Made by a program: the position numbers and the translations under genes. Below are positions 3,205-45,871 of a stretch of 55,829 nucleotides of DNA, piece after piece. The DNA is from Paramoeba atlantica. Taxonomy: Eukaryota > Protista > Discosea. The first letter of the stretch is position 1. Each line of letters opens with the position of its first letter. The DNA lies in the NCBI GenBank assembly GCA_977017575.1, contig CDRNVI010000101.1, positions 1 to 55,829 of the forward strand, read 5' to 3'. The notes beneath the pieces are model-generated. The model was not told the DNA's origin and made no database searches. It saw nothing but the letters and a program-made list of their open reading frames with translations.

Positions 3205-3385
3205 CTAATGGGAGGGGGGGTTAAGTTTCATTTTATGATTTTTTTTGGAAAAAAGTATTTTACCTATTTTTAGAAAGTGACAGATAACTCGGGGGGGTAG
3301 TCGACGAAAAAAAAGAATCGAAGTCCCAAAAAGTGACAGATAACTAGGGGGGGGTGACGTGTGACAGATAAATAAGGGGGTACAG
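3205..3385. mobile_element. MITE end (family C) with GTGACAGATAA subrepeats
   Basis: Ends GGGGGTACAG followed by TA (3386-3387); three GTGACAGATAA copies; homologous to 6914-7015. Confidence 0.6.
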
Positions 3386-3614: not shown

Positions 3615-4846
3615 ATGGCCGAAGCACCATGTACGTTGATTGACGCTATATTACACTTTGTATCTATGGCAACGGAAGTCGATTATACTTCCGACAGTCT
3701 TCTTGAACTACTCGGTCAACATGTCTCCCAGTTTTCTCAGGCGTACAAATTTACACCCCCCGCCGAAAAGTATTGTTCACAAAAATGGCGGACACAAAAA
3801 GTATTGTATTTATTAGTATCGACTATTTTTTTGAGTTTTGACCTGAATTCTAGTTGTTTTTCTCAAATTTTCAGGAAATTAGCATAATGAGTTCTGATAT
3901 ACGCGGCCACTTGATCATCTCGAGGGAAGCTGAGTGATTTCTCTCCTATTTTTATGCTTTATTATACGTTTACACAGATCCGATATGATAAAGTCCAACT
4001 TTTTGGAGGCCAGTGGCAACTCGTGGAAATCGCCAAAAAGTATTGTATTTATTAGTATCGACCAAAAACTCGTGGTCGATACTAATAAACTACAATACTT
4101 TTTGGCGGGGGTGTATGCTTGACGTGAGCATTCTTCCAGACATTTTGCACATTTCCACGTTTCTAGAAATTACCGACATTACAATGTCGTTTCACTATCG
4201 AAATTTTATACTTTTCGCACTTCGCGTAATGGCTTCAGTACTCGGTGTTCCTACTGTTGTGTACAGGCCGCACGTCAAACTCATTGACATCATTCCCCCT
4301 TTTCTAGTTGTCGACACTTTTCCCGTTACAGAACTCCATCTTTTCACGTTTATTGCGAACGGCGTCAGCAACTTGATACCAGCTACTTTTCGGAGTGAAA
4401 TAAAGCTCCTTGCTCCTCAGCCCTTAAGCTCAATTCAGAATACAACGCCCGCAGAAAAATTCTTGGTCACTAGTGATGCACCCGAGCCCCAAAGGTTTGG
4501 AATAGAAGAAGGCCGAGCTCTGGCCACTACGTACAAATGTGCCGCAGATTTATATCCGCGTAGAGCCCGTAGAGCGCATCACGTTTTAGCACCCTCGTGC
4601 ACAGAGAAGATTAACCCGTCGGGGTTAGTTAGAGATAACTGGCCCAATGATGAGTATGAGGCATTTCTATCGAAGGTGCATCGTTGTCTAGAAACAGTGA
4701 CGAAGAAAACTTCTGATGGGATCGTAGCGCAGTGTAATATTTCGCGCTGCACAAATGGAAACGTTATGGAAAGATATCCGAGCTGCCAATCCCACTTTCA
4801 CTTCGCGCACAGCTGCCCGTGGGGAATGGGGAAGTTTTCAAAATAG
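3615..4846 (+). pseudogene. Hypothetical ORF (289 aa when reconstructed) interrupted by a MITE
   Basis: Removing 3754-4113 plus one TA joins ...QAYKF to MLDVSILPD... in frame (870 nt). Confidence 0.45.
3754..4113. mobile_element. 360-bp MITE (family D)
   Basis: TIR CACCCCC(C)GCC(G/A)AAAAGTATTGT at both ends; TA at 3752-3753 and 4114-4115; internal 17-bp hairpin. Confidence 0.85.
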
Positions 4847-18130: not shown

Positions 18131-18643
18131 GTGATAAAATCGCGAAAAAAGGGGGGGTATGGTCGATGAAAGGAATACTCATGATTTTCACTTTCGCCAG
18201 GGGGTGTGATTAGACAAGTCGTTAGGTCCAGTAACTCTACATCTGAGATTGTTGGGTTCGATTCCCACGGAGGTACTTTTCGTCCGGCTACACAGGGATT
18301 AGCTAAGAAGCTTGGGTCCACGATATCTGAACGGATTGGTCCATTTTTCAATCCCACCCAATAGCATGTGCGTTGGACGCGACTTGTAGTTTTTTTACAC
18401 GAACTACATGCAGCACGAACGTCGTTAGTGGGAAGCAAGTTGCGAAGTCGAAGGAGTGGTAGGGTGAGGAGCGCAACGATGATGCGGATACCACTAAAAG
18501 AAAGCGACAACGCACTTTCGAATCTAGTGGGTATAAGATGCACGATATTGATGATTGGTTGTTATCGTTTCATTGATGTTGAAATTTATTGCGGTCAATG
18601 CATAACCGGTTTTCCTTATTTACGGAATTTCTTAATTTTGGTT

Positions 18644-18880
18644 CCTCTCTAATTACGGCTCCCCCTAATTACGGTTTCTCTTTAATTACGGTTCCTCTTT
18701 AATTACGGTTCCTCTCTAATTACGGTTCCTCTCTAATTACGGTTCCTCTCTAATTACGGTTCCTCTCTAATTACGGTTCCTCTCTAATTACGGTTCCTCT
18801 CTAATTACGGTTCCTCTCTAATTACGGTTCCTCTCTAATTACGGTTCCTCTCTAATTACGGTTTCTCTCTAATTACGGTT
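18644..18880 (+). repeat. 17-bp tandem array (CTCTCTAATTACGGTTC) x14
   Basis: 14 AATTACGG cores at ~17-bp spacing. Confidence 0.95.
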
Positions 18881-18957
18881 AACCGATTTAAGGTTAAAAT
18901 TCTCGGCACTGGTGGAATAACCGTAAAACAGCGTTCCAAGGACCTGAAATCGCCGAT

Positions 18958-26890: not shown

Positions 26891-27499
26891 TTATTGAAGT
26901 GGAGCATACTCTATCCATGATGCAGGAATCTTCCAACATGCTTGAGTAGGCATGTGACTTCGAGCTATCTTTCCACGAAGTCCAGGATTCCCCGTTATGT
27001 CGAATGCAGCAGTAGGCTTCATAAGAGTCGTGTGCTGCAAACACGAAAGATCCACAAATCCGGTGAATCTACAACTGGATACATTTAACACATCAATGTT
27101 AGGCGGAAGATGGGCAAAGTCTGGCTCCCCTGTAAAAAAATTGTGTTGAAGCCACATGCACGTCAAAGGCTGAGGTAAGGTTGTGAAGTCAACATCGCCA
27201 CCCAACCGATTCATCAGCAGCCGGGCTTGTTGTATCGTACGCGGTAAATACAGCCAATGTAATGTCCCATTCAGTTCACGTTGACGCCATCTTAAATCAA
27301 CTATACTCTTAGATTTGTCACATTCCACGCCGTCCCACTCGCAGGCAGCCGTATGCGTATCCCATGAGGGGTGCGGGTTCTTAACATCACGGACAAATTT
27401 AGCAAGTTCGTATTCCTGCGGCAGAGCAACGCCCTTTACCTTACCTGCACGTGCTGCTGAGGGTGCAACGTCGGCTGCCTCATACAATAGGAGTGACAT
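26891..27499 (-). CDS. Short LRR protein (AAD...RAGKVKGVALPQEY subfamily)
   Basis: ACEWDGVEC cap and LRRs; intact 202-aa ORF. Confidence 0.85.
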   Translation of the reverse strand: MSLLLYEAADVAPSAARAGKVKGVALPQEYELAKFVRDVKNPHPSWDTHTAACEWDGVECDKSKSIVDLRWRQRELNGTLHWLYLPRTIQQARLLMNRLGGDVDFTTLPQPLTCMWLQHNFFTGEPDFAHLPPNIDVLNVSSCRFTGFVDLSCLQHTTLMKPTAAFDITGNPGLRGKIARSHMPTQACWKIPASWIEYAPLQ

Positions 27500-28250: not shown

Positions 28251-28490
28251 CGTCTCCGAAACACACAACTCGCAGACAATTCAACATCCCTTTTTGTTCT
28301 CCAAAATCAGAAAACCTTTCTTTTAAGTAGTTCCGGAAGCATTCTCCAGTCGCTTCCGGTCCCCTAGAAAAAAGGTCGGGGTGTGTCCATTAGCTGAAAC
28401 AATTTGGCACAGGATTGCAGGAGCGGGTTACATGGGTTCTAATGTCCCAGCCTTTATGGACGCTATCTTTAGCGTCCATAAAGTCTTTTG

Positions 28491-31163
28491 CGAGCGAACG
28501 CGGGCACAAATTAAGGAATGTCGCAAAGCGATCAAGCTGAGGGAGGAGGAAGCTACAATGCAACGCAGAGATCTAGATGAAAGATGGGCCGCACAGAGAT
28601 TCTCTAGAAACTCGTGGACCGCGGCATCCGAAACGATTGATAAACCTAACGGAAGAGAGGTAGAAAACACCGCATTTCCCACCTGTGACAGATCTAGCAT
28701 TGAATCATACTTTCAAGAAAGTTTTACCCCCAATGAGCAATCCTCGCGTCTCCCTCCTTCAGATCTACTAGGTCCGACAGCTAGCCAGCCAATGCAATGG
28801 AACCCGATCTCCCGTGAGGATGTCACTGCAGCTGTCACAATGAAGCGCAACGCCAGTTCTCCAGGAACCGACACGATAACTAACAAAATACTCAAAAACT
28901 GCCCATCGACACACGAATACTTTGCATCTGTGTTCAACGATATAATGACTTTCTCTGTGTGCCCGCTATCATGGAAAACCGCAGTAACCAGGCTGATATA
29001 TAAAGCAGGTAGCAAAGAAAATCCGAAAAACTGGCGCCCGATCTCCCTTACTAGTGCTCTAGGTAAAACCTTTCACACGATCATCGCACATCGACTGACT
29101 CAACACCTGACTGAACACCATGTCATTGACCCTCAAATACAAAAAGGCTTTCTCCCTTCCATTAACGGTACACTGGAACACACCCAAACTCTTTGCTCAC
29201 TCCTGCGACATTACCAGAAACACAAAACTCAATATTGCCTCGCACAACTCGACCTGAGCAATGCCTTCGGGTCTGTCCCACATCATATCATACATGCCGC
29301 TCTGAAATGGGCCCAAGTACCGCCGGAGGTCATCCACTACATCAAAAATACCCTAACGGATGCGCACATGCGCATTAAGTGCTAGGAAGGTCTTACGCAA
29401 CCTATCTCTATACGAAAAGGTGTCCTCCAAGGGGATACCCTCTCTCCTATTGTCTTCCTGATAGTGATGTAAATTGTTTTGCGATATGTCCGATTCTCCT
29501 GCCCCCACTTCGGTATGAAACTCCCAAACGGTCTGAACAACTTCCTTAAGGCTTTTGCTGATAACTTAACTATTCTTACTGAAAGCGACGGAGACATGCA
29601 AAACGCACTTGATGCAGTTACCAAAGTGCTGGGCGAGCTAGGCCTTAAGATTAACGTGAACAAGAGTCGAATACAGTGCATGAGCACCCGTAAAGGCGAG
29701 GAACATCCAGGCTATATGACAAGACGTCCGGAAATAAAAGTCTACGGAGAGACCATACCACACATATGTGATGTCGGTAGCACCTTCCTCGGGATGACCT
29801 TGGCACCGGGGTCCCAACAACTGAAAGAGCTGTTTCGTAAACTCGACTCAAAACTAAAACAGTGGATGGAGAACATCACACAAAGTGCCCACAGCCTTCC
29901 CGCTAAGCTTTTGATGTACAAAAATGCCGTTCTCTCACGTCTCCGTTTTCAGTTCGTTATTCACCCGTCGTTAATTTCACCCATCGTTATTCGGATCCGT
30001 GCTACGCCTTCAGAAGCGAGCCACGTCTCACATACGGAAATGGATAAACATGGCGTGTGCCGGAAGCTCTGAAGTCCTGTACTCTTGCCGAGGCTGGAAC
30101 CTTACGAGCCTGTCAAAACTTTGGTACGAATGCACGGGAGAATCTATGACGCAAATGAACAAATCCAAAGATCCAAATGTCCTACATACACTTCGCATAC
30201 GCATACAGGAAGAGCAACACAAACGTCAAAGAGGTCAAATATGACCCGCTACTTTAATTACAGAACATCTGGATGATCCCCGAATGACTCATCAACGGCT
30301 TCGTGAAGCACATGAGGAGCAGCAACGCGCGCCCATCGCAGCCCTATGGTGGCAATTTCCTACGGATCCAGAAATGGCCCAAGAATTCGCTTCTGCCATA
30401 AATGGGATCCGGAATGCGAAGATCTCCCGCTTTGTAGCATCCGTCATGACTCTTACACCGCTCCCTTCCCGAGCAGCGCTTGTTCAATGGGGCCGCAGCA
30501 CCTACAGTAACATGAAATGCCCTATTTGCAACGACCGAGTGCAAACCGTCAGACACACCCTTTCCGCCTGCACCACTTCACTTCAGCAAGGACGATATAC
30601 TTTCCGTCATAACCTTGTCCTTGCCGAATTTGCGAAACATATTAGGGAAGCACAGGGAACTGAGTTTTCATATTTCGACCTACCAGGAGAGCGTAACCCA
30701 CCAGCTTGGCTGAGGGAACACGATACACTGCTCCGTCCCGACGGTTACATTAAACTTCACAATGGGACAGAGTTCCTCATCGAACTCACAGTCCCATGGG
30801 AGGAGAATGCGGAGAACGCTCATCGGAGAAAATCCGAGAAGTACAACATCCTTTTACATACACGGCGACAGGAAAACCCGGACACCTACATAATAGCCTT
30901 TGAAATAGGTGCCCGGGGATTCCCCAATGGGTCATGCAAATATAGTAATGCCATCTTTAACGGCGACCATATTTTGGCCACAAAGTGTCGAGAAAGCATG
31001 ACACAGATGGCCCTCAGGGGGAGTTACATACTCTGGGCTCGCCGAAATGAGGCGACATGGTCGGAGGAGGAAACGTATTGACATTGTCTTCTAAAAAGGG
31101 GGCAATCCCGATGAATGCGGGTCATACCCCCGACTTACTCTACTGGAAAGTATGAAAAATAAA
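28491..31163 (+). mobile_element. RLE-type non-LTR retrotransposon, 5'-truncated copy 1 (defective)
   Basis: RT motifs PGTD, WRPISL, QKGF, LDLSNAFGSV, GVLQGDTLSP, FADN; CPIC...H...C knuckle; RHN, RPDG, IELTVPWEE, RKSEKY; ends TATGAAAAATAAA; near-identical to 38316-40991. Confidence 0.95.
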
Positions 31164-31292
31164 GATCTATTTACAGCTATTTCTACTTTGGGACCCTGCA
31201 GTTTGTGACATGTTTTCGCATTTGTACGACGACTGTTTCACTCCTTTCGTAACGAACCTGCAACAGGCATCTCCATTTATTTTAAATACATT

Positions 31293-31904
31293 TCAAGACT
31301 CCTTTTGAACCCATAATGCAGGAATCTTCCACCATGCTTTAGTTGGAAAAATACTGCGAGCTATTGTTCCATTAAGCCCAGGATTCCCCAGTATAGCGAG
31401 TGTAGCAGTGGGCTTTGCAAGACTCGAGTGCACCAGACAGGAAAGATCCACAAATCCTGTGAATCGACAATTCGATACATTTAATATATTAATGTTGGGG
31501 GGTAGATGGGTCAAGTCCAGCTCCCCTGTAAATAAATTGTTTTGAACCCACAAGTTCAGTAAAAGTTCAGGCAAGGTTGCGAAGTCAACATCGCCACCCA
31601 ACTGATTCGTCATCACCCGGGCTCGTTGCATCGTACGCGGCAAATGCAGCCAACGTAATGACCCTTTCAGCGCACGTGAATACCATCTTACTTCGCTTAT
31701 ACTTTTAGATTCGTCACATTCCACACCGTTCCACTCGCAGGCAGGCGTATGCGTATCCCACGAGGGGTGCGGGTTCCTAACACCACGGACAAATTTAGCA
31801 AGTTCGTATTCTTGCGGCAGAGCAACGCCCTTTACCTTACCTGCGCGTGTCGCTGAGGATGTAGCATCGGCTGCCTCACACAATAGGAGCGAAGAACGTG
31901 TCAT
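31293..31904 (-). CDS. Short LRR protein (AAD subfamily)
   Basis: Intact 203-aa paralogue of 26891-27499. Confidence 0.85.
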   Translation of the reverse strand: MTRSSLLLCEAADATSSATRAGKVKGVALPQEYELAKFVRGVRNPHPSWDTHTPACEWNGVECDESKSISEVRWYSRALKGSLRWLHLPRTMQRARVMTNQLGGDVDFATLPELLLNLWVQNNLFTGELDLTHLPPNINILNVSNCRFTGFVDLSCLVHSSLAKPTATLAILGNPGLNGTIARSIFPTKAWWKIPALWVQKES

Positions 31905-32237
31905 AATATTCTCGGGAGTGAACTCGGATGAATCAAGACTAGTTCTAGAACAAAAAACATTGCAATCGAAGTTCTCTCAATCGTTTTCCGTACATTGTGC
32001 TGCCCCGCACATAAATAAACTTATAAATGACTATGCAGTTTATCATACCCCCGGTATTCTGCGAAAGTACGGATACCTTATGTTAAATAGCACTATGTAA
32101 TTGCTGATTAAGTTGATTTGATGATCATGCGCTCGTTGGCACAGATATAATTCCCCTATTGCGATGGCCGATATCACCACGAAGGTCCACTCGGGCCCTA
32201 CATTGGGTCCACTGTAAACCCTGTTCTGGGTTAATGT

Positions 32238-32720
32238 GCCTATAGCTAATTATTGTGCCGGGGGGCACAATAAGTGGGAAGGACCGCTATTATTATGCCC
32301 CCCGCAAGTAAAAAGGGGTCTTAAGACAATTTTCGCGACTGCTGCAGACGAGGCATTGCGGTAGTCGAAAAATCTAAACCAAAAAATTCATCACGTTGGC
32401 TCGGCATTGACATTTCATAAATATTTTCGGCCTCTATAACAAAAAGGCACTGCGAAGCGGCGCCATTTTTTTTGGGGGCTTTTTCACGAAGGCTAATTAA
32501 AGGGCTGAAACCAGTAAAATGCAAACCCAGGTAAATACAGTCAGGTCCCAAGAGAAACCAATGGCAAAGGTATTTGGCGTTTTTTCGGTTATGGAGTTCG
32601 CTGGAGGATCCGGGTAGGGGGTCTAGGAGGCTACAGTGGGATATATGGAAGGTATTCGGGGTGACTATAGCCACGTATTTTGCCTATAGCTGGTTATTGT
32701 GCCGGGGGGGGGCACAATTA
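32238..32720. repeat. Segment bounded by a directly repeated palindrome TTATTGTGCC(G)nGGCACAAT
   Basis: GCCTATAGCT..TTATTGTGCCGGGGGGCACAAT at 32238-32271 and 32682-32718; probable MITE remnant. Confidence 0.45.
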
Positions 32721-33042
32721 CTCGGAACAGGGTTATTTTGTAATTAATGAGCAGATGTGGGTGAGGCCAAAACGAGATCACGCGAGATCACATGAGATCG
32801 CGCTAGCCCCTCAAATGAAGCATTTTGTTTTCGCAAATCGAAGAAAAGAACCGAATTAGAAGTTTTAACTAGAAGACCTTTCTGTTGGAGAGGGGTTACG
32901 TTCTAAACATCGAAATGTAAAAGGGGTTCTGACAAGACACATACATGTACGATCGAGGGGTCACCGCAACTACTTTGTCTCTTGCAAAAGGATTGATAAA
33001 TACTTCTACAAGTACGTTACTTGTAGAAACTCTGAGAGAATG

Positions 33043-33762
33043 TTACTCTACAACAACAAGATTCGTGTTCGAAACAATCTTAAGTATATTTTTTTGTAAC
33101 TCTGGATGAAGTTTACTCACTGCTATTGTACCTTCGAGAAGGGTATTGTTCTCTAATGATAAACTCTCAAGGTTTTCGGGAAAAAATGAGAAATCAACGA
33201 ATCCTTCAAAAGTATTGTCGGCCAAGTATAAAGCTTCCAGAGTGCGAGGAAGTGCCCCGAAATTAAGTTTTCCTGTCAATAAATTATCACTGATGTCCAA
33301 ATACCACAAATCAGCAGGTAACTGTGTAAGGCATACATCACCATACAATTTATTTCTCTCCAGCCATGCGGCATTCAAACATTGCGGGAGCTCTGTGAGA
33401 TCCGGATTTCCTGTGAACGTATTTCTCCCCAGAAAAAAATCTGTCAGCTCTTCTAATCGAGAAAAATCGCTGAGTCCTATTTCACCACCGACAGAGTTGT
33501 ATTCAATGTCAAAACTGGAAACGGATCTTGGAATATACTGAAATTTCATGAATCCTGTTAACTTTTTACCACTCCAGCGTACCTCTTTAATTAGCTTATC
33601 TGCATCGCACGCTATGCCTTCCCATTCACAAGCCGAGCGGTCTGCGGTCCAACTCGCTGCTCGGTTGTGTAAACCACTAGTGAGTCTCTCAAGATCGAAT
33701 TCTTGTAGCACATTCACTGCACGAACCTTTGACGGACATGTTGAACGTTGAGGGTGATCCAT
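33043..33762 (-). CDS. Short LRR protein
   Basis: ACEWEGIAC cap, GNPDLTELP and LRRs; intact 239-aa ORF. Confidence 0.9.
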   Translation of the reverse strand: MDHPQRSTCPSKVRAVNVLQEFDLERLTSGLHNRAASWTADRSACEWEGIACDADKLIKEVRWSGKKLTGFMKFQYIPRSVSSFDIEYNSVGGEIGLSDFSRLEELTDFFLGRNTFTGNPDLTELPQCLNAAWLERNKLYGDVCLTQLPADLWYLDISDNLLTGKLNFGALPRTLEALYLADNTFEGFVDFSFFPENLESLSLENNTLLEGTIAVSKLHPELQKNILKIVSNTNLVVVE

Positions 33763-34061
33763 TTTGCGGGAGAAGGTTCAGATATTCGGTAGGTAAAATA
33801 GACAATAGAATATAAACTTATATTGCTCTTTTGGTAATCAACATGCATGTAGCAGTGTTTGGAAGTTCGTCCCAATGCAATGCATCTCCAACCGGTAAAA
33901 CCATTTGAAAAAATAATGAGTATCGTATACCATATACCAAGAGTCAAGTGTACCATATACCAGTGTAAAGTACAGGTTAAGGCAAACCTAAACATTTACT
34001 TACTCTTTCGGTTCGCTCATCTCGCCTGGTCGGCTTTGTACACAAATGGGATACCGCACCG

Positions 34062-36155
34062 CTACCCGTTGGCACGTCCCCACGTAGAGCAGCGAATGTA
34101 CCTTGCCTGCACGCCCTCCTCCGTTTCCCCGTCGTCGTACTCTACGCGATATTGAATGTGTTGAGGCGACACCGATCGGTTCGGTTTCACAGGCGACAGC
34201 GCTATAATTTTTGCCCGACACCACAGTGTGCCTTGTTGCCACCGCACCTCCACGGTATCCCCCACATTATATGGGGCTGCTTTTTGTGTGTTTTCAAATC
34301 CTATCGGGTTGGAAGGGGTTTCGAGGCTCAGCCTTGTTGTCGAAGCCATAAAGGTCTCGGATTTGGATGACTCGGAAAGTCCAGATACGCCGGTAAAGGG
34401 TAACAGGGTAGTGCTGGAGATATTCGAATCGGGTTTCACATCCGTCCGTTTTCGTATACGCGTCGTTTCGGGGGAGTACACCTCCCTTCTCCTGTCACTG
34501 TCTTTGTTGGTAAAATTTGCTATCTTGGGCTCCGGCATGTCAGGAGCAGAGTGTGCAGTGACGTTCGGAGAGTGGGGATACTCGTTTTGATTTTTCGTCT
34601 TTCTGCATTCAGGCTCCTTGACGCAGCCATAATCCATATCCAAACAAAAGCGCGTGCCCTCCTCGAGATAATGTCGTGGATTCAGCACAATGAGCACCAC
34701 CGAAATGTCATCATGGAAGTGACGACGTTTCCCACATGGGATGGAGAGTAGATCGGGAAGACTCATGGCGTGAGCCGAGGCCACTTTGGTGCGCAGTGCG
34801 TGTCGGATTAAGTCCGCGGGCACGGCGCTGCACCACTCACTGGCATCCGCAGCCTCGGGTCGTGCAAAAACCCGGAAAGGGCTGGATGCGGTCGAAGAGT
34901 CACGATGACGTACAAAGGAGGGAAACTGAGACTCGGCTGGGGTGTGTTTGTGAGTTGAAGGCAATTCTTTTGACTCCGAGGACGCCTTAATTTGTTCGTC
35001 TCTCCACACAACGCTTTTGGAGTGATTCTCCAAGTCTCGGTCCTGCAGGCATTCATCGGTAAATCGTTGAGCGGCTCTCCTTAACAGCACGTCCGTGAGA
35101 TACACAATCTCCTCATTTGTGAGTAAATTATGTAACCCATCGGACATCAAAACTACAAAAAGATCACTAACGGAGACCAGACGAGAAGTAATCTCCGGGC
35201 TGGCATGGATATAAGGGATATAATCGGAATACGGCGTCATGGAGAGATTTTTATGTTTTAAATAACCGTCCCCGAGACTCCGGGTGACCATTAAGCTCCC
35301 CGCAACCCGCAAAGGGGCGCCTGGGACTTTCAAATGGAAAGGAGTACGGCGTAGGGGGGTGGGATCCGAGGTGCGGGCTTGAAGATCGGAAACCTCGGAT
35401 TCGTTCTCAACATCGTGGTCCCGGGTCAGGGGAATGGCCTCGAGTATGGAGATGTATCCGTTCTGTGAGATAGAACAGCTGCGCGTGCTCGAAATCCTGG
35501 ACACGGGTGGTTCCATAGCAGAAAACGAAAATGGCTTTGATTTTTTTGACGCGGGTGAAATGATCCGGATTTTTTCTTCCTCCGCGAATTGCAAGGATGC
35601 GGATTGAGACGCCCTTTTTTCTTTTGAATTTTTACAGAACTGTGCTTCGTTATTTTCCAAATTAGCGTTTCCATACTCCCGAACAATACGCATCCTACTT
35701 CCTGACCTTCCTTTAGAAATTTTCATTTCCTTCGACATTTTCTCATTTTTTTCTGTTTCTTCTTCTCGCGTAATGCGACGGCGACACAACACAGCTCGAC
35801 AGTCCCCGACATGGGCTGTCGTAATCCGCTCTTTTCCCAACACCAACGTCAGAGCACACGCCCCGGATGTCTTCTTCCGTACCCCCTCCGTAGCCAGAAA
35901 TTCCCTGTCCATGTTCTCGTAGCTCGCGCGTAACGCTGCCTCGATGGAGCTCGCGTTTGTATTGTGGATTTGAGAAAAATAAGTATCCGCAATTTCGGGA
36001 AATTCTGCAGCACAATAGGAGGAGCATACCGGCCCTCCGTGGCCATCAAACAAGGAGAACAAGGCAAGGCTTTGGTTGCGAACATAGCCGAAGCAAGCGC
36101 GGTCCTCGTTGTGGGTGTTGGCTGCGACGGTCGCGAAAGAAACAGGGCGCGTCAT
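34062..36155 (-). CDS. PP2C/PPM phosphatase with C-terminal Tudor/Agenet-like domain
   Basis: FDGHGG, HVGDCRAVL, LTRDH, VTRSLGDGYLK, MSDGL, RRHFHDDISV; C-terminal VGDTVEVRW...YRVEYDDGETE. Confidence 0.9.
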   Translation of the reverse strand: MTRPVSFATVAANTHNEDRACFGYVRNQSLALFSLFDGHGGPVCSSYCAAEFPEIADTYFSQIHNTNASSIEAALRASYENMDREFLATEGVRKKTSGACALTLVLGKERITTAHVGDCRAVLCRRRITREEETEKNEKMSKEMKISKGRSGSRMRIVREYGNANLENNEAQFCKNSKEKRASQSASLQFAEEEKIRIISPASKKSKPFSFSAMEPPVSRISSTRSCSISQNGYISILEAIPLTRDHDVENESEVSDLQARTSDPTPLRRTPFHLKVPGAPLRVAGSLMVTRSLGDGYLKHKNLSMTPYSDYIPYIHASPEITSRLVSVSDLFVVLMSDGLHNLLTNEEIVYLTDVLLRRAAQRFTDECLQDRDLENHSKSVVWRDEQIKASSESKELPSTHKHTPAESQFPSFVRHRDSSTASSPFRVFARPEAADASEWCSAVPADLIRHALRTKVASAHAMSLPDLLSIPCGKRRHFHDDISVVLIVLNPRHYLEEGTRFCLDMDYGCVKEPECRKTKNQNEYPHSPNVTAHSAPDMPEPKIANFTNKDSDRRREVYSPETTRIRKRTDVKPDSNISSTTLLPFTGVSGLSESSKSETFMASTTRLSLETPSNPIGFENTQKAAPYNVGDTVEVRWQQGTLWCRAKIIALSPVKPNRSVSPQHIQYRVEYDDGETEEGVQARYIRCSTWGRANG

Positions 36156-36408
36156 ATAAAATCGTACAAAGTATACCGCAAGGTGATATAAATGGTAAGT
36201 CGGAGTTGTGAGTTAGCACTAATTCTTCTTAAACCACCGGTGTGAACTGTAGTTAAGGTTGGTGAAAGAAAATGATAATATAATAATAATAATAATGATC
36301 ATATAATAATAAAGTTTACTTTCTGCAATATTACACATATAACTATGAACTAAAACTAGAAAGATATAGAAAATTTATTGCTTTAGTCTTCCACGGTTAT
36401 CAGCGTGT

Positions 36409-36831
36409 TCACCCAACTTTTCTGTCCAGTGCAGCAAAGTGTTTCTGTCCCTCTAATAGCCAACGGTAGCCCTGTAAGACGAACCTGTTCATACATTTCT
36501 CGATTATCGTCCAACAACAAACCATGCAATCCCCACGGAAGAGCAGCAAAATCGAAAAACCCCGAAAAACGATTTTTAGATATACTGTAGATAAGAAGGC
36601 TAACGATCGAGGGAGAAGTGATACATCAATTTCCCCAGTAAATAGATTTCCTGTTAAACAAAACGATTCCAGTCCAGGGGGCAAAACTGTAAAGTCCACT
36701 GACCCCGCAAGTCCGCAATAAGCAGCAGAAAAATGAATGATTATTGATGGAAAGTGCTCCCACTTTAGGTTTCCACCCAGATCGTACAAGGCCCATTGTA
36801 TTTCATCGATGTTACCAGAGGAGCTTTGCAT
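36409..36831 (-). pseudogene. Degenerate or short LRR gene
   Basis: GSVDFTVLPPGLESFCLTGNLFTGEIDVSLLPRSL; the N-terminal cap is not in frame. Confidence 0.6.
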
Positions 36832-37493
36832 TGTTTTTATGCCATTCCACTCACATACAGGATCCTAACATTATTCGAAATTCTTCATTATCAATAGCAT
36901 TCTTACGTATGTATTTTATACGTTCTAACCCTCCTGTCTCCCGGTGGCGTTTAACCCATCGAGAGACAGTTGCTTCACTTCATTTCGTAAAAGCAGCACT
37001 GTCTGCAATCGAACGCCTCTGGTTTTGTATCTCATGGAGGCAAATTACACGTGTTTCATAAGTGATTTGTTGCGTCCAGAAGGTGCGCCTCTGGCGGCGA
37101 AGTGTTTTCGGCATAAAATGGGTTAGAAAGAGTTAAATGGTATTTTATTCATAGTTTGATGCGCTAGAATGACAAAAAATGATAAAAATCTGATTTTTTG
37201 CAGAATTTGTGGTTAAGAATTTCAGTAATTTATTCTCAAGTCGTCATATCAGCTTCAGGGGCGGCAACAATGGTGCCAGTAGTCTTAAAATTTCGAGATC
37301 TGTTGAATGCCGTAGGAATTAGGTCAAAAGCTCGCACGATACAAATTTTAGACCCCCCCACCTTTTTCGTGACCCCCCCTGTATAGTGGCGATGCCGCAT
37401 TTTATGCATACCCCCCTACTATTCGCAATAAAAAAAGTTAAGAACACGATCCTACGAATATTGAGACGGATAGGTTCGCGTAATAAATACGTT

Positions 37494-37678
37494 TCAAGAC
37501 TCTTCTTGAATCCACGACGGAGGAATGTTCCACCATGCTCGAGTAGGCATGTGACTGCGGGCTATTGTTCCATTAAGCCCAGGATTCCCTGTTATGTCGA
37601 ATCCAGCAACAGGCTTTGCAAGATTCGAGTGCACCAGACAGGAAAGATCCACAAATCCGGTGAATTGACAATTGGATA
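37494..37678 (-). pseudogene. LRR gene 3' part (orphaned)
   Basis: SNCQFTGFVDLSCLVH...WIQEES; the upstream part is cut off by the 576-bp insert. Confidence 0.85.
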
Positions 37679-38254
37679 GTGTTTTATCATGCACTTATAG
37701 TGCAGAGATTTACTCACCATGTCCTTATCCCGCATACGCCGGGTGGATCATGTGAGGTTTCGTCCTCGCCGGAGGTGTGCGGGTGCGGAGAGCTGGCGTC
37801 CCAGGTGCAGAGAGCTCGGTTGTCATGTGCAGGTGCAGAGAGCCGGATGCGTAATCCCCATATTACAGTTTCGGGGGCAATCCGGGTGCAGAGAGCTGCG
37901 ACAGAGCCGAGGTGCGGAGAGCTGGGCGACCGCCAGGTGCAGAGAACCGAGTCTCGTCGGCGGAGGACACGTCTAGTGGTCCTCAAGGGAGGCCACCGTG
38001 ACGCATGGCCCTCTCGGAGAGGAAAAAGACAAGTCGAAAAAAGCCGAGAGGGGGAAGCACACTCACTCCAGGGGAGTGAGTCGGGGAGGGGTGAAGTGGT
38101 GAAAGCGCGTCCCCTGCTTCAGCGACAAGAGGGACAGTTCCGACCTTAGTGCCGGCCGGCAACGGGCATGAAAATACAGTAAGAGTATGCCCGTTGCCGG
38201 GGAAAGAAAGGATGAACTAAGGAAAAAGTACCAACAAGGTACAGAAACTGTATC
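37679..38254 (-). mobile_element. 576-bp spliced-leader-headed non-coding insert (SINE-like), copy A
   Basis: Begins GATACAGTTTCTGTACCTTG; splits LRR codons ...GTGTTAAA | TATCCAAT...; GC-rich with CTCTCTGCACC repeats. Confidence 0.75.
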
Positions 38255-38315
38255 TTTAACACATCAATGTTGGGAGGTAAATGAGCAAAGTCCAGCTCGC
38301 CTGTGAATAAATTGT
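38255..38315 (-). pseudogene. LRR gene middle fragment
   Basis: Encodes NLFTGELDFAHLPPNIDVL between the two inserts. Confidence 0.85.
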
Positions 38316-40095
38316 TTTTATTTTTTCATACTTTCCAGTAGAGTAAGTCGGGGGTATGACCCGCATTCAACGGGATTGCCCCCTTTTTAGAAGACAATGT
38401 CAATACGTTTCCTCCTCCGACCATGTCGCCTCATTTCGGCGAGCCCAGAGTATGTAAGTCCCCCTGAGGGCCATCTGTGTCATGCTTTCTCGACACTTTG
38501 TGGCCAAAATATGGTCGCCGTTAAAGATGGCATTACTATATTTGCATGACCCATTGGGGAATCCCCGGGCACCTATTTCAAAGGCTATTATGTAGGTGTC
38601 CGGGTTTTCCTGTCGCCGTGTATGTAAAAGGATGTTGTACTTCTCGGATTTTCTCCGATGAGCGTTCTCCGCATTCTCCTCCCATGGGACTGTGAGTTCG
38701 ATGAGGAACTCTGTCCCATTGTGAAGTTTAATGTAACCGTCGGGACGGAGCAGTGTATCGTGTTCCCTCAGCCAAGCTGGTGGGTTACGCTCTCCTGGTA
38801 GGTCGAAATATGAAAACTCAGTTCCCTGTGCTTCCCTAATATGTTTCGCAAATTCGGCAAGGACAAGGTTATGACGGAAAGTATATCGTCCTTGCTGAAG
38901 TGAAGTGGTGCAGGCGGAAAGGGTGTGTCTGACGGTTTGCACTCGGTCGTTGCAAATAGGGCATTTCATGTTACTGTAGGTGCTGCGGCCCCATTGAACA
39001 AGCGCTGCTCGGGAAGGGAGCGGTGTAAGAGTCATGACGGATGCTACAAAGCGGGAGATCTTCGCATTCCGGATCCCATTTATGGCAGAAGCGAATTCTT
39101 GGGCCATTTCTGGATCCGTAGGAAATTGCCACCATAGGGCTGCGATGGGCGCGCGTTGCTGCTCCTCATGTGCTTCACGAAGCCGTTGACGAGTCATTCG
39201 GGGATCATCCAGATGTTCTGTAATTAAAGTAGCGGGTCATATTTGACCTCTTTGACGTTTGTGTTGCTCTTCCTGTATGCGTATGCGAAGTGTATGTAGG
39301 ACATTTGGATCTTTGGATTTGTTCATTTGCGTCATAGATTCTCCCGTGCATTCGTACCAAAGTTTTGACAGGCTCGTAAGGTTCCAGCCTCGGCAAGAGT
39401 ACAGGACTTCAGAGCTTCCGGCACGCGCCATGTTTATCCATTTCCGTATGTGAGACGTGGCTCGCTTCTGAAGGCGTAGCACGGATCCGAATAACGATGG
39501 GTGAAATTAACGACGGGTGAATAACGAACTGAAAACGGAGACGTGAGAGAACGGCATTTTTGTACATCAAAAGCTTAGCGGGAAGGCTGTGGGCACTTTG
39601 TGTGATGTTCTCCATCCACTGTTTTAGTTTTGAGTCGAGTTTACGAAACAGCTCTTTCAGTTGTTGGGACCCCGGTGCCAAGGTCATCCCGAGGAAGGTG
39701 CTACCGACATCACATATGTGTGGTATGGTCTCTCCGTAGACTTTTATTTCCGGACGTCTTGTCATATAGCCTGGATGTTCCTCGCCTTTACGGGTGCTCA
39801 TGCACTGTATTCGACTCTTGTTCACGTTAATCTTAAGGCCTAGCTCGCCCAGCACTTTGGTAACTGCATCAAGTGCGTTTTGCATGTCTCCGTCGCTTTC
39901 AGTAAGAATAGTTAAGTTATCAGCAAAAGCCTTAAGGAAGTTGTTCAGACCGTTTGGGAGTTTCATACCGAAGTGCGGGCAGGAGAATCGGACATATCGC
40001 AAAACAATTTACATCACTATCAGGAAGACAATAGGAGAGAGGGTATCCCCTTGGAGGACACCTTTTCGTATAGAGATAGGTTGCGTAAGACCTTC

Positions 40096-43000
40096 CTAGC
40101 ACTTAATGCGCATGTGCGCATCCGTTAGGGTATTTTTGATGTAGTGGATGACCTCCGGCGGTACTTGGGCCCATTTCAGAGCGGCATGTATGATATGATG
40201 TGGGACAGACCCGAAGGCATTGCTCAGGTCGAGTTGTGCGAGGCAATATTGAGTTTTGTGTTTCTGGTAATGTCGCAGGAGTGAGCAAAGAGTTTGGGTG
40301 TGTTCCAGTGTACCGTTAATGGAAGGGAGAAAGCCTTTTTGTATTTGAGGGTCAATGACATGGTGTTCAGTCAGGTGTTGAGTCAGTCGATGTGCGATGA
40401 TCGTGTGAAAGGTTTTACCTAGAGCACTAGTAAGGGAGATCGGGCGCCAGTTTTTCGGATTTTCTTTGCTACCTGCTTTATATATCAGCCTGGTTACTGC
40501 GGTTTTCCATGATAGCGGGCACACAGAGAAAGTCATTATATCGTTGAACACAGATGCAAAGTATTCGTGTGTCGATGGGCAGTTTTTGAGTATTTTGTTA
40601 GTTATCGTGTCGGTTCCTGGAGAACTGGCGTTGCGCTTCATTGTGACAGCTGCAGTGACATCCTCACGGGAGATCGGGTTCCATTGCATTGGCTGGCTAG
40701 CTGTCGGACCTAGTAGATCTGAAGGAGGGAGACGCGAGGATTGCTCATTGGGGGTAAAACTTTCTTGAAAGTATGATTCAATGCTAGATCTGTCACAGGT
40801 GGGAAATGCGGTGTTTTCTACCTCTCTTCCGTTAGGTTTATCAATCGTTTCGGATGCCGCGGTCCACGAGTTTCTAGAGAATCTCTGTGCGGCCCATCTT
40901 TCATCTAGATCTCTGCGTTGCATTGTAGCTTCCTCCTCCCTCAGCTTGATCGCTTTGCGACATTCCTTAATTTGTGCCCGCGTTCTCTCGCGTTCCGCCC
41001 GGTTCCTCGTGTAACGTAGCGATCGTTTCATCGTTTCTAAATGGTGTTTGAGATCGGTTACGGTTCTTTCCGCCGCGAGTGGTCGGTATCTACGTCGTGC
41101 ATGTCCGGTACTGGTCCTTATCAGGAAACCTTTCGTCGGATTTGCCTCTATGGCGACTTCATGTGCTGAGACTGCTAATGCGGCACTGAGTAATTCCGCG
41201 TTTCGTACAGCTGCCTCTTTATCCGGTGTAGGGGTAAGTAGTTGAATGCATCTCTCTTTCGCTCTCGATTCGACAATCCGCCACTGTGCCTCATTTAGTC
41301 GTATCGTAACCTTACCTCCGCTTATGGCTTCGTGCTTCTGGAGAAGTTGCGTTTGCAATCTGGTTCGAGAGTAGGCTGCTTGCTCGGGGGAGGCAGGGTA
41401 CTCTGCAGCCGGAGGAGGGCTGTTCGGGTGCTGGATGGCTGCTGCATCGGTCTCTGAGTCTTCGGTGTCTCTTTGCGTAGTGTTCCTCCGGGCATACACT
41501 GGTCCGTATACTTTGCAGCACTTGTGGGCACATTCCACTTTGTTTCGACATGTGTGCTGACACGGGTGCAAACTAAGCTTCGTAGGTGCCCTACTGATAG
41601 TTTGGATGCGGTGAGGGGATACTTCTCGGCACGGGTTCTTTTCATAGTGTACGTCTGAGGGATCTTCATCCCGCTTATGTAGTGTAATATGCAGATGTTG
41701 AAGGAGGGGCACATCCCGTCCGGCAAGAACCTTGAGGATTGCGCGGCCGAGTGCTCCCGCGGAGCTGTATGACTCACCAAGTTTGAAGGTATCATCTTTG
41801 TAGAGGGAAGTCCAGCTGGCGTGCCGTCGGTGTTCTTGCGCGTGCGCTTGTTTTACAACCCTTATATAGTCACATCCCTGGTGATCCATGAGTTCGTCCA
41901 GTGAGGCTGGCTGAACAATTAGGTCGTGGGAGCTTCCGTTCCCTGAAAGCATTTTACTGAGTGCCGCTTGCGCTGCTTGATGAGAAGCAATTCTGGCCAA
42001 ATGAAGATTTTGTTTGTGTTGAAGCGATGCACTCAGTCCAGTAGGTGTTGTGGCGGCGTCATCTAGGTTTCCCGAGTGTTGGTTGTTGAACACCCAGGTG
42101 GGAACTTCATCCGTGCTTTCTTCCAGTAGGATGTGATGGTCTACGGAGACGCTAGGTACCGGTAGTGGGGAAGGGAGGCGAGCGAGCACCTCGGGATACA
42201 GAGATTCTGTATTTTGGTTTTCGTATCCAGGGATCTCGTCGTTTTTAGTGGCACTGCATGAGGTAGCTATCGCGGCGTCGTTTTTGCTGTCGCAGTTTGG
42301 TTGCTCGGGAGCGCGATTTTCAAGGTGCAATAGTGGATTCGTACAATTGGGTTCATCATTCTCTGCTTGTACATTATGCGCGCTTGGAGCTTTGGGGGTA
42401 AGGAAGTCTATGTACCAGAGAAAGATGCGTAGTGGTAATTTTACAAGTTCCAAAATGATGGTCGATGTTGATGTCTTCTTGGTCTTCCCAAGTAGCAACC
42501 AAAGTTCATCGTATTTCCGTGAGACAGGCGTTTTGAAGTTGGAGAGGGTTAGATAGATCTGGTTGATTGCCACTGGAACTAGAGGTATGCTGCTTCGCAA
42601 AAGACTGAGCGCATACCATGTGAGTGCGAATATTAAGTGGACAAGTGTGCAGAATAGTTCCATGAGGTACTTCACGTTATGAAATAGTATTGCAACCTTG
42701 AGGGTCTGCTCCGTGTAGGGGTTGCTCATTTGATCTGGAGTAGTGTGTACTAAGTGGCGTTTGCAGCAGGCATGCTTGCATGTGTTTTTGTTTAGACATT
42801 TAAGTTTACATGGCTTCGTTTGAGGTGGTTCTGTAGAGTTTCGGCAATATGCAGGTTGGGTTACGAAGTAGGGTATTTTCATGAATATTGTCGCCAGTAA
42901 TGCTTCGACGATGCAATATACTCTCCCGAAGAATCTCGGTGGGGTGCTTATATTCGTCAAGTTCGGTGCTGTAGGAATATCGATTTTGTTTATGCGAGGC

Positions 43001-43275
43001 TGTTGCCTCTTACAACACGGGTGAAGACATGTTCGTTTGTTGAGGCACCTGTGTTTACATGGTGTTCCGTGGGTCATGGGGGTTTGCGGTACCATATTTG
43101 CAGTCACTAGTTCGGTTGGCGTGACGCATGATGGTCGTTCGGAGGGGGCACCATTCTCGTCGACGGGACGTCCATGGTCTAAGAGATCAACGGTTGACAT
43201 ATCAACGCCGCGTGGTCCTCCTGTAAGGTCCTGCGGCGCATCAGCATGAGTGCAATGTGAAGGGGGTCGCGTCAT
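40096..43275 (-). pseudogene. Retrotransposon ORF, N-terminal 1059 aa up to the first premature stop
   Basis: Continues in frame through TAG (40096-40098) and TAA (40009-40011) into GVLQGDTLSP and FADN. Confidence 0.9.
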
Positions 43276-43304
43276 GGTAACGATAAAGATAAGAGAAAAA
43301 AAAA

Positions 43305-43333
43305 CAAGGTACAGAAACTGTATTTTTATCGTT
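43305..43333 (-). other. Spliced-leader (mini-exon)-like sequence AACGATAAAAATACAGTTTCTGTACCTTG
   Basis: Contains the kinetoplastid/diplonemid SL core CAGTTTCTGTAC; starts exactly where the flank stops matching 37041. Confidence 0.8.
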
Positions 43334-43483
43334 CAAATTACACGTGTTTCATAAGTGATTTGTTGCGTCCAGAAGATGCGCCTCTGGCGGCGAAGTGTTT
43401 TCGGCATAAAATGGGTTAGAAAGAGTTAAATGGTATTTTATTCATAGTTTGATGCGCTAGAATGACAAAAAATGATAAAAATC

Positions 43484-43531
<48 letters not shown>

Positions 43532-43823
43532 AGAATTTGTGGTTAAGAATTTCAGTAATTTATTCTCAAGTCGTCATATCAGCTTCAGGGGCGGCAACAA
43601 TGGTGCCAGTAGTCTTAAAATTTCGAGATCTGTTGAATGCCGTAGGAATTAGGTCAAAAGCTCGCACGATACAAATTTTAGACCCCCCCACCTTTTTCGT
43701 GACCCCCCCTGTATAGTGGCGATGCCGCATTTTATGCATACCCCCCTACTATTCGCAATAAAAAAAGTTAAGAACACGATCCTACGAATATTGAGACGGA
43801 TAGGTTCGCGTAATAAATACGTT

Positions 43824-44008
43824 TCAAGACTCTTCTTGAATCCACGACGGAGGAATGTTCCACCATGCTCGAGTAGGCATGTGACTGCGGGCTATTGTTC
43901 CATTAAGCCCAGGATTCCCTGTTATGTCGAATCCAGCAACAGGCTTTGCAAGATTCGAGTGCACCAGACAGGAAAGATCCACAAATCCGGTGAATTGACA
44001 ATTGGATA
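43824..44008 (-). pseudogene. LRR gene 3' part, duplicate
   Basis: Identical to 37494-37678. Confidence 0.85.
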
Positions 44009-44584
44009 GTGTTTTATCATGCACTTATAGTGCAGAGATTTACTCACCATGTCCTTATCCCGCATACGCCGGGTGGATCATGTGAGGTTTCGTCCTCGCC
44101 GGAGGTGTGCGGGTGCGGAGAGCTGGCGTCCCAGGTGCAGAGAGCTCGGTTGTCATGTGCAGGTGCAGAGAGCCGGATGCGTAATCCCCATATTACAGTT
44201 TCGGGGGCAATCCGGGTGCAGAGAGCTGCGACAGAGCCGAGGTGCGGAGAGCTGGGCGACCGCCAGGTGCAGAGAACCGAGTCTCGTCGGCGGAGGACAC
44301 GTCTAGTGGTCCTCAAGGGAGGCCACCGTGACGCATGGCCCTCTCGGAGAGGAAAAAGACAAGTCGAAAAAAGCCGAGAGGGGGAAGCACACTCACTCCA
44401 GGGGAGTGAGTCGGGGAGGGGTGAAGTGGTGAAAGCGCGTCCCCTGCTTCAGCGACAAGAGGGACAGTTCCGACCTTAGTGCCGGCCGGCAACGGGCATG
44501 AAAATACAGTAAGAGTATGCCCGTTGCCGGGGAAAGAAAGGATGAACTAAGGAAAAAGTACCAACAAGGTACAGAAACTGTATC
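44009..44584 (-). mobile_element. 576-bp SL-headed insert, copy B
   Basis: Identical to 37679-38254. Confidence 0.75.
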
Positions 44585-44645
44585 TTTAACACATCAATGT
44601 TGGGAGGTAAATGAGCAAAGTCCAGCTCGCCTGTGAATAAATTGT

Positions 44646-45066
44646 ATTTATTTTTTCATACTTTCCAGTAGAGTAAGTCGGGGGTATGACCCGCATTCAA
44701 CGGGATTGCCCCCTTTTTAGAAGACAATGTCAATACGTTTCCTCCTCCGACCATGTCGCCTCATTTCGGCGAGCCCAGAGTATGTAAGTCCCCCTGAGGG
44801 CCATCTGTGTCATGCTTTCTCGACACTTTGTGGCCAAAATATGGTCGCCGTTAAAGATGGCATTACTATATTTGCATGACCCATTGGGGAATCCCCGGGC
44901 ACCTATTTCAAAGGCTATTATGTAGGTGTCCGGGTTTTCCTGTCGCCGTGTATGTAAAAGGATGTTGTACTTCTCGGATTTTCTCCGATGAGCGTTCTCC
45001 GCATTCTCCTCCCATGGGACTGTGAGTTCGATGAGGAACTCTGTCCCATTGGGTAGAACTCTGTCC
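44646..45066 (-). mobile_element. RLE retrotransposon, severely 5'-truncated copy 3 (~0.4 kb)
   Basis: Only NGTEFLIELTVPWEE...EEETY plus the 3' UTR remain; rearranged 5' junction at 45051-45066. Confidence 0.9.
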
Positions 45067-45475
45067 TGGGGGGTAGATGGGTCAAGTCCAGCTCCCCTGT
45101 AAATAAATTGTTTTGAACCCACAAGTTCAGTAAAAGTTCAGGCAAGGTTGCGAAGTCAACATCGCCACCCAACTGATTCGTCATCACCCGGGCTCGTTGC
45201 ATCGTACGCGGCAAATGCAGCCAACGTAATGACCCTTTCAGCGCACGTGAATACCATCTTACTTCGCTTATACTTTTAGATTCGTCACATTCCACACCGT
45301 TCCACTCGCAGGCAGGCGTATGCGTATCCCACGAGGGGTGCGGGTTCCTAACATCACGGACAAATTTAGCAAGTTCGTATTCCTGCGGCAGAGCAACGCC
45401 CTTTACCTTACCTGGGCGCGCTGCTGGGGGTGTAGCGTCGGCTGCCTCACACAATAGGAGCGAAGAACGTGGCAT
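45067..45475 (-). pseudogene. LRR gene 5' part, reading into the retroelement (chimeric ORF 44918-45475)
   Basis: Near-identical to the first 136 aa of 31293-31904, up to LTHLPP. Confidence 0.85.
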
Positions 45476-45871
45476 AATATTCTCCGGAATGAACTCGGTT
45501 GATTAAAGCTACATGTATGTAGTTCTAGAAATAAAGAATTTGCAATTGTAGTTTTATCAATTGTTTTCCATACATAATAAAGCATATTCCAGGATAGTAT
45601 ACCTTGTAGGTATATTAAATGGGTACGGTATACTAAATGTTGTCTAAAAAGCCAAAAAAACGCGGCGCTTCGTGGCGCATTCCTTATCTGTAGTTGCTAG
45701 AAAAATGGTGGCTTGGCCTTCAAATAAGATTTCTTGGGTTGCGCTTGCTAGAAAAGTTGCTCTGTCGCTTCTAAAAATGGGACGTCTACCGCTTATGTTG
45801 TGTTGAAGGGGGTAGGTTTGCAAAATGGCCTTGGGTAGTAGGTCCCGAAATTATTAATGATCTTTTTGCGA

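Follow-up and report, generated by a model that had tools for sequence, protein, structure and literature searches.

A probable preference of R2/CRE-like retrotransposons for one codon register of leucine-rich-repeat genes in Paramoeba atlantica

Among long interspersed nuclear elements (LINEs) with a restriction-like endonuclease (RLE), target-specific members are described that insert at spliced-leader genes, U2 snRNA, 5S rRNA and microsatellites (PMC4640811). Here we analyse a 55,829-nucleotide stretch of DNA from Paramoeba atlantica (contig CDRNVI010000101.1, positions 1 to 55,829; hereafter the window), which holds copies of an apparent RLE-type LINE, element E, and of a 576-bp non-coding element, S576, in and beside genes that encode leucine-rich repeats (LRRs); junctions of related elements were collected across the genome. 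Our reading, to which we assign a probability of about 0.8, is that a superfamily of R2/CRE-like elements, together with the rider S576, integrates preferentially at one register of the LRR coding repeat, in sense orientation, through target-primed reverse transcription (TPRT).

The CRE clade (CRE1, CRE2, SLACS and CZAR) comprises RLE LINEs of kinetoplastids and has been reported in free-living Bodo saltans (PMC4728078, PMC12278014); the members described use a single position in the spliced-leader RNA gene as their insertion site (PMC12278014). Compared by features, these elements resemble the present ones in being RLE-bearing and site-specific, with zinc-finger-like motifs, target duplications of variable size and, probably, a single open reading frame (ORF). 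The present elements differ in lying in LRR coding repeats or elsewhere, in carrying the leader exon as their own 5' head rather than as flank, and in ending with a hairpin and a short A/T-rich tail instead of plain poly(A).

R2, which inserts into 28S rDNA (8gh6, 9nl3, 9dou), has the same order of domains as the elements described here – reverse transcriptase (RT), then CCHC and PD-(D/E)xK endonuclease – and the same marks of TPRT: a precise 3' junction, loss of few target bases and frequent 5' truncation. Also common to both are head-to-tail chains, compatible with template jumping or re-use of the site, and a structured 3' untranslated region (UTR), likely a handle for the RT. However, R2 reads one unique and invariant rDNA sequence, whereas the target here would be a degenerate motif present in thousands of protein-coding repeats; and an N-terminal zinc finger or Myb domain of the R2 type was not detected in element E by Pfam. 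NeSL-1 and elements of the Utopia/Keno/Mutsu/Dong type are likewise RLE LINEs that home to multicopy targets, but those targets are RNA genes or simple repeats. A literature search turned up no report that connects RLE LINEs to LRR or other protein-domain coding targets, and no description of homing to a fixed codon position in a family of protein-domain repeats.

For S576 the nearest parallels are LINE-dependent short interspersed nuclear elements (SINEs) and leader-bearing retrocopies (e.g. dinoflagellate retrogenes). Like these, S576 is a short element without coding capacity; its 3' hairpin and ATGA tail recur in the LINEs and, as in leader-bearing retrocopies, a leader relic at the 5' end would mark a trans-spliced RNA template. 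Unlike SINEs it is without a tRNA, 7SL or 5S head: the head is host leader exon, variably 5'-truncated, and the element appears to inherit the codon-register target preference.

Junctions in LRR coding sequence

The 3' end of S576 is present in 53 copies in the genome, which reduce to 40 independent junctions once haplotig duplicates are merged. Seventeen of the 40 lie in LRR coding sequence, all in sense: beyond ...GATAAAAC the flank continues, in element orientation, as (L/I/V/M)xx(N/C)x(F/L)xG..(D)L..LP, with the Asn codon 8-14 nt (in one case 21 nt) further on. The nick falls just 5' of the sixth codon of the repeat, approximately 9 nt before the conserved Asn codon, and 5' flanks that are LRR end directly after the fourth codon, plus 0-3 nt. 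When flanks were scored with a strict regular expression, LRR motifs were found 14 times in sense and never in antisense. Copies of S576 are 97-100% identical and hence young.

RLE domains occur at 140 or more loci in the genome (at least 140), many in open frames of 1500-1860 aa. Forty of these endonuclease-domain loci, from several families, were sampled by taking 411 nt downstream. All of the LINE families end in CTCTGC-hairpin-(G/T)(C/T)ATGA followed by a short A/T-rich tail, a scheme that the 3' end of element E fits (CTCTAC TGGAAA GTATGAAAAAATAAA). The 3' flank is in the LRR register at 12 of the 40 loci (L102, L104, L105, L107, L110, L111, L117, L119, L125, L127, L131 and L132), and ten of these flanks pass the strict expression, which matches 1.4% of positions in the LRR-rich window (the null). 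In one LINE family the flank starts exactly at the sixth codon (ATTAAA|CTATCATACAACAAGTTTACAGGA and similar); by pattern census, six of its eight independent copies are in LRR, with one more uncertain. LRR abundance was gauged with a stringent DNA pattern for NxFxGxxDL, the LRR_8 family being uninformative for this type of LRR: the pattern occurs 2056 times in the 45.7-Mb genome, compared to 29 times for the control. Positions in the LRR register have a genomic frequency of about 0.1%.

A first-pass annotation of the window had proposed, from three junctions, that RLE retroelements target LRR coding repeats. Genome-wide 3' junctions uphold this, the counts for S576 and for the LINEs both standing far above the 1.4% null; the octamer motif that the annotation placed at the centre of its proposal is not general (see below). 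What is constant across junctions is the register: the nick is set 9±1 nt 5' to the Asn codon in LxxLxLxxNxLxG.

The window, its other haplotype and the sites of element E

The features of the window that bear on the insertions are as follows.

28490..31163, + strand: element E copy 1, a 5'-truncated 2.67 kb retrotransposon, apparently R2-like with RT/CCHC/RLE; 3' end ...GTATGAAAAATAAA
31164..31176, + strand: 3' flank of copy 1, GATCTATTTACAG, containing ATTTACAG; spacer/3' UTR of LRR gene B, antisense
31293..31904, - strand: LRR gene B, an intact 203-aa paralogue with LRRNT_2 and 23-24-aa repeats; both target sites uninterrupted
37041..38315, - strand: downstream duplication copy flanking E copy 2; 3' half of the LRR gene from ACAATTTATTCACAGG, nested 576-bp element, spacer
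37679..38254, - strand: S576 copy a, non-coding; spliced-leader head (A)AAGATACAGTTTCTGTACCTTGTTG, 3' end CTCTGCACTATAAGTGCATGATAAAACAC
38316..43333, - strand: element E copy 2, full length, ~5.0 kb; head is spliced-leader nt 7-38 with one mismatch
43334..44645, - strand: upstream duplication copy; 3' half of LRR gene C and spacer, S576 present in this haplotype
43824..44008, - strand: last 3' stretch of LRR gene C, on the downstream side of S576, SNCQFTGFVDLS... up to the stop codon
44009..44584, - strand: S576 copy b, of the same sequence as copy a and duplicated from that one event
44646..45051, - strand: element E copy 3, the last ~410 bp of E; joins LRR gene C via ~16 nt of filler (45052-45067)
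45068..45475, - strand: 5' part of LRR gene C, which has its start codon at 45475

The ends of copies 2 and 3, ...ATAAA(A/T), lie near 38315 and 44645 (- strand), and ACAATTTATTCACAGG comes next in each case; both S576 copies are followed by TATCCAATTGTCAATTCACCGG. Self-comparison of the window aligns 37194-38721 with 43524-45051 at 99.9% identity, and contig C98, which represents the other haplotype (98-99% identical to the window), is without copy 3. Thus copy 3 is ruled out as a separate insertion: copies 2 and 3 count as one event, as the first-pass annotation had it, and copy 3 with its flank and the second 576-bp insert appears to be a duplicate of the end of copy 2, its flank and its insert, produced in C101 by a later duplication or conversion. 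The sole length difference between the two copies is an A-run in the duplicated spacer (6 A at 37194-37199, approximately 43 at 43477-43538).

In C98, element E is full length and has on both sides a stretch of ~695 bp whose limits are ACAATTTATTCACAGG, inside the LRR gene, and ...gtgtaatttg in the spacer downstream. Of the two copies of the stretch, the upstream one is part of an intact LRR gene, free of copy 3 and of the 576-bp insert. Because its boundaries coincide exactly with both ends of E, and because the two copies are 99.4% identical compared to 83-93% for the other LRR paralogues here, the stretch is best read as a long target-site duplication made by the insertion of E. At this site the C98 allele (L003) has a further element, ~440 bp long and 5'-truncated, which separates the LRR flank from the 576-bp element.

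The intact gene of C98, which carries ...GTTCAAAACAATTTATTCACAGG...GTTAAATGTATCCAATTG, shows both empty sites in order: ...TGGGTTCAAAACAATTTATTCACAGGAGAG...GATGTGTTAAATGTATCCAATTGTCAATTCACCGG. The 3' end of E joins at CAAA|ACAATTT in the repeat LLNLWVQNNLFTG, approximately 4 nt short of its conserved Asn codon; the 576-bp element stands in place of TG in GTTAAA[TG]TATCC, inside the sixth codon of the next repeat (IDVLNVSNCQFTG). The S576 site is empty, with TG instead of the insert, both in C98 and in contigs from three public sequencing runs (same organism, one study), where 44008 is joined to 44585 with CA between them (+ strand). The two hits do fall in consecutive repeats of one gene, as had been claimed; the distance between the nicks in the empty allele is 63-64 nt. 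The 5' part of gene C is 93% identical to gene B and 98% identical to the intact C98 allele.

Copy 1 ends at 31163, where GATCTATTTACAGC comes next, and is 99.6% identical to 40991..38308 (window self-comparison); RVT_1 was detected on its ORFs by Pfam. Neither flank reads as LRR, the position being the spacer 3' of the LRR gene 31904..31293; a location within a decayed LRR gene is ruled out by these flanks. Genome-wide, element E has only five independent sites, at which the 2.67-kb, the 779-bp and the full-length copies have one common 3' end. The site of copy 1 is intergenic; the second is in LRR gene C, with the nick ~4 nt before the Asn codon; at the third (C52; haplotig C8) an LRR gene contains a copy of 779 bp (...SSLPEVMF|E|LRGNNFES), with the nick 10 nt before the Asn codon. 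The fourth and fifth (C2 and C55) are two independent insertions, whose junctions differ in detail, at a single position in an unrelated ~420-bp repeat (R400). The claim that the window's RT/RLE element sits in LRR thus holds in part: two of five sites are at or near the register (chance ~2.5e-4 on a generous null, from a small sample), and copy 1 is not in LRR coding sequence. For the E subfamily the LRR preference is weaker, and the LINE family closest to E scores 0 of 4 copies in LRR, against 6 of 8 for the family described above.

The ~420 bp repeat, as seen 5' of E on C55 and C2 (L015:800-1511 and L016:780-1485), starts with (TTG)n TTTAACCCGTTTGGCC and ends ...CACCAGCGGRGCTCGAC..TTCACAWTTTAA; hit twice by E, it may itself be another retroposon with a remnant leader head.

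The genome is eukaryotic, with ORFs that are long and free of introns and with small LRR genes whose N-terminal cap is of the plant type. Four such LRR genes (- strand, ~200-240 aa, LRRNT_2 cap) are found in the window, at 26891-27499, 31293-31904, 33043-33762 and 43824-45475, in a cluster interspersed with PP2C, RabGAP-TBC and PQ-loop genes. A tandem array at 18614-18919 consists of ~18 copies of a 17-nt unit (92-97% identity).

Target definition, mechanism and competing explanations

The footprints of TPRT are a fixed 3' end, 5' truncations, the loss of TG, the ~695-bp duplication and an empty allele. On this evidence all of these elements integrate by TPRT: the antisense strand is nicked just 5' of the sixth codon of LxxLxLxxNxLxG, and the 5' junction forms right after the fourth codon with the loss of few target bases (TG at the window site). 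The element protein would read the degenerate LRR-codon consensus downstream of the nick, in the manner of R2's N-terminal domains on rDNA. The RNA intermediate appears to be trans-spliced, copies beginning with a variably 5'-truncated host leader exon. The half-site downstream of the nick would survive insertion, and for this reason head-to-tail chains could arise at one site; chains fit either such re-use of the half-site or template jumping by the RT. Arrangements in which a 3' tail abuts the leader head of the next element are seen at three LINE flanks (L106, L130 and L135), at L050, L056 and L061/L062, and in the C98 allele, with several 576-bp copies among them.

A number of observations weigh against this reading or limit it. 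About half of all S576 and LINE junctions are outside LRR DNA: the specificity is a strong preference and not an absolute one. Only two of the five E sites are in LRR, with differing nick offsets (about -4 and -10). Junctions were set by eye and by regular expression, without family consensus sequences. Targeted and untargeted LRR repeats of the same loci, when compared, showed no extra nucleotide feature beyond the general LRR consensus; since the profile is the same in both, it would be the whole LRR consensus that defines the site (T at -8, AAY at 0-2, TT at 6-7, GG at 12-13, T at 19 and GA at 21-22). The ~900-aa N-terminal part of the E protein, including its Cys/His motifs, gave no Pfam match, and no DNA-binding domain was recognised in it. 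The E copies of the window were probably mobilised in trans, because they are broken. Finally, of the public contig pieces listed over 43300-45600 none spans copy 3's 5' junction, which may be an assembly artefact.

If the endonuclease recognised an octamer rather than the repeat as a whole, LRR genes would be hit as carriers of that octamer. This was the first-pass annotation's view of its three junctions, on which ATTYACMG and the codons for F-T-G were said to converge. The junction strings it quoted are all present in the window, and ATTYACMG does lie 5-13 nt downstream of each; in addition, a TTYACA core is found 6-15 nt downstream at four of the five independent E sites, and the non-LRR 3' flank of copy 1 agrees with the LRR string ATTTATTTACAG (genes B and C) at 11 of 12 letters. 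Beyond the window the convergence disappears: ATTYACMG accompanies 1 of 40 S576 and 1 of 40 LINE junctions and F-T-G codons 3 of 40 in each set, which rules out the octamer as a general target motif, and targeted repeats encode FSG, LSG, LEG, FDG, FNG and others. Even among E sites the distance from nick to TTYACA ranges from 6 to 15 nt, and the third site has TTTGAAAG instead. The motif, which occurs 14 times in the window (7.4 expected), was defined post hoc, and two of its three cases have it because they are homologous F-T-G codons of one gene. Recognition of the octamer is on these grounds improbable; the TTYACA core leaves room for a subfamily-specific preference near the proposed motif, which may exist in the E subfamily only.

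Three further explanations were considered. Were insertion random and followed by retention only in dispensable and abundant LRR genes, the abundance of sites (at least 2056 by the stringent NxFxGxxDL pattern) and the many insertions that break LRR genes with intact paralogues nearby would be accounted for, but neither a single nick position per 69-72-nt repeat nor an exclusive sense orientation (14:0) could result; the copies are moreover young, and haplotypes differ in whether the insertion is present. A single nick position with a single orientation is therefore more than chance, LRR abundance or retention bias can provide, and we give this explanation almost no weight. Hardly more credible is the spread of a single ancient LRR insertion by gene duplication or conversion. 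Such spread has happened once in the window (copy 3 with S576 copy b), and haplotig pairs inflate raw counts; yet the 40 merged S576 junctions have unrelated flanking nucleotides around elements that are 85-100% alike, different LINE families with different tails share the register, and empty alleles exist. Terminal microhomology is used by R2-type reverse transcriptases, and 5' junctions here often show 1-4 nt of microhomology between target and leader head (G, GA, GATA, AAA), as expected if base pairing of the element's RNA or cDNA ends with LRR DNA, and not protein recognition, chose the site. However, 3' tails differ by family (ATGATAAATTAAA, ATGATATCATCA, ATGATAAACAAAA, ATGAAAAAATAAA, ATGATAAAAC) at an unchanged register, no element end resembles LRR sequence, and the targets are too diverse at the nick for pairing: this explanation is very unlikely, if somewhat less so than the preceding two.

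Preferential integration at the LRR register, if correct, has several implications. R2-like machinery can then evolve to read a degenerate motif in thousands of copies, which bears on the evolution of target choice in the clade; R2 proteins are under development as gene-insertion tools (PMC13580325). The elements would, in a free-living protist of the kinetoplastid type, disrupt and partly duplicate LRR genes in a recurrent and directed way, and their spliced-leader heads would be direct genomic evidence for trans-spliced RNAs as templates of retrotransposition. A more speculative extension, improbable in our estimate, is that LRR homing goes beyond parasitism: with a cut at a boundary common to all repeats, the elements could constitute a standing mutagenic or recombinogenic system for secreted or surface LRR genes, a large family whose members would be broken, truncated, duplicated and reshuffled. 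This view is prompted by the single insertion in the window that duplicated ~695 bp (half an LRR gene). Relatedly, the element protein may be a natural reader of a codon-register DNA motif.

Coding content and spliced-leader heads

The ORF of element E at 43275..40096 matches RVT_1 (Pfam, 5e-12) and is continued in ORF 40002..39409. The best PDB matches of the RT piece are R2Bm (8gh6, 2e-9) and L1 ORF2p; Pfam found no apurinic endonuclease (APE) on the 1059-aa E piece. The C-terminal piece contains CPIC..H....C, then RPDG..ELTVPWEEN..K..KY (CCHC and RLE motifs). In 13 paralogues from the genome, C92, C95, H104, C109, R164-P165-D166, E180-L181-T182, K196, K199 and Y200 are invariant. A single-sequence PDB search with this piece gave no R2 match: the match needed the 13-sequence profile, which aligned with the R2 proteins 9nl3 and 9dou (E = 7e-9) at CCHC, (K/R)PD, (D/E)xT and KxxKY, in the region of their zinc-knuckle and restriction-like endonuclease domain. 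A look-up in the ESM Atlas returned only unnamed zf-RVT fragments. By these matches the window elements appear to be RLE-type (R2/CRE-like) non-LTR retrotransposons with RT, CCHC and then PD-(D/E)xK endonuclease. In the N-terminal part of the E ORF (40099-43332, - strand), PCxHxCxNKxxCxHxCCK is found three times, at residues ~92-110, 174-192 and 617-635, a candidate metal-binding or DNA-binding module.

In the window E copies the ORF contains two in-frame stops and is thrown out of frame by a 13-nt indel. The indel is missing from the copies on C2 and C55; where the window and C55 copies have a TAA stop, those on C2 and C98 have GAA. Defects common to the window copies (38403-43275 and 28490-31081) are a stop at E nt 4102, an 18-nt deletion and the 13-nt insertion, none of which is found on C2 or C55; the C98 allele is without the nt 4102 stop and the 18-nt deletion but has the 13-nt insertion, and the TAA stop at E nt 3330 is also present in the C55 copy. 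This pattern of shared defects suggests conversion between the inverted E copies, whose arms were scored as 100% identical over 2684 nt in a repeat search.

S576 has a sole ORF, without a Pfam match. Its 3' end AATCTCTGCACTATAAGTGCATGAT is common to the LINE copies L123 and L132, which, carrying S576's own 3' hairpin, are its likely partners; S576 itself appears to be a short, non-coding and non-autonomous rider of LINEs (SINE-like).

Both E and S576 start ...CAGTTTCTGTACCTTGTTG, a string found 903 times in the genome. On C97 and C107, where it is repeated in tandem with a period of ~2.56 kb, the leader gene reads, from its exon, AACTTTAACGATAAAGATACAGTTTCTGTACCTTGTTG|GTATGAGAAG..., and we take it to be a spliced leader of the kinetoplastid type. 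The elements share only the leader exon: the gene continues ...CCTTGTTG|GTATGAGAAGCTTCGAAC... and S576 ...CCTTGTTG|GTACTTTTTCCTTAGTTCATCC..., which rules out the 576-bp insert as a spliced-leader RNA gene unit. In a subfamily of S576 the join to the leader lies 15 nt farther along, behind a pyrimidine tract plus AG (TTTTTCCTTAG). Heads start at leader nt 7 (E copy 2), 9-10, 13-15 or 22, and with starts so variable a fixed 11|12 cut of the leader head is ruled out. Because only the exon is shared, and because the S576 body differs from the leader intron, the heads are best interpreted as relics of trans-spliced RNA templates, i.e. host leader exon with variable 5' truncation.

Insertion into a spliced-leader gene was found neither at the five E sites nor in the 40 sampled LINE flanks, the arrays on C97 and C107 lying elsewhere. 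True spliced-leader RNA gene arrays are present on C97, C107, C11 and C74, and at locus L148. Some array units are 7.3-7.7 kb apart instead of ~2.6 kb (C74: 106880, 114174 and 121486; C97: 20864 and 28600), and an RLE-domain locus (C74:100274-101128) adjoins the C74 array; the wider units may contain true spliced-leader-gene-targeting relatives alongside the LRR-targeting elements. Four spliced-leader 3' strings on C1 (9752, 14845, 19938 and 25030), at an exact spacing of 5093 bp, look like a tandem leader-headed unit of LINE size.

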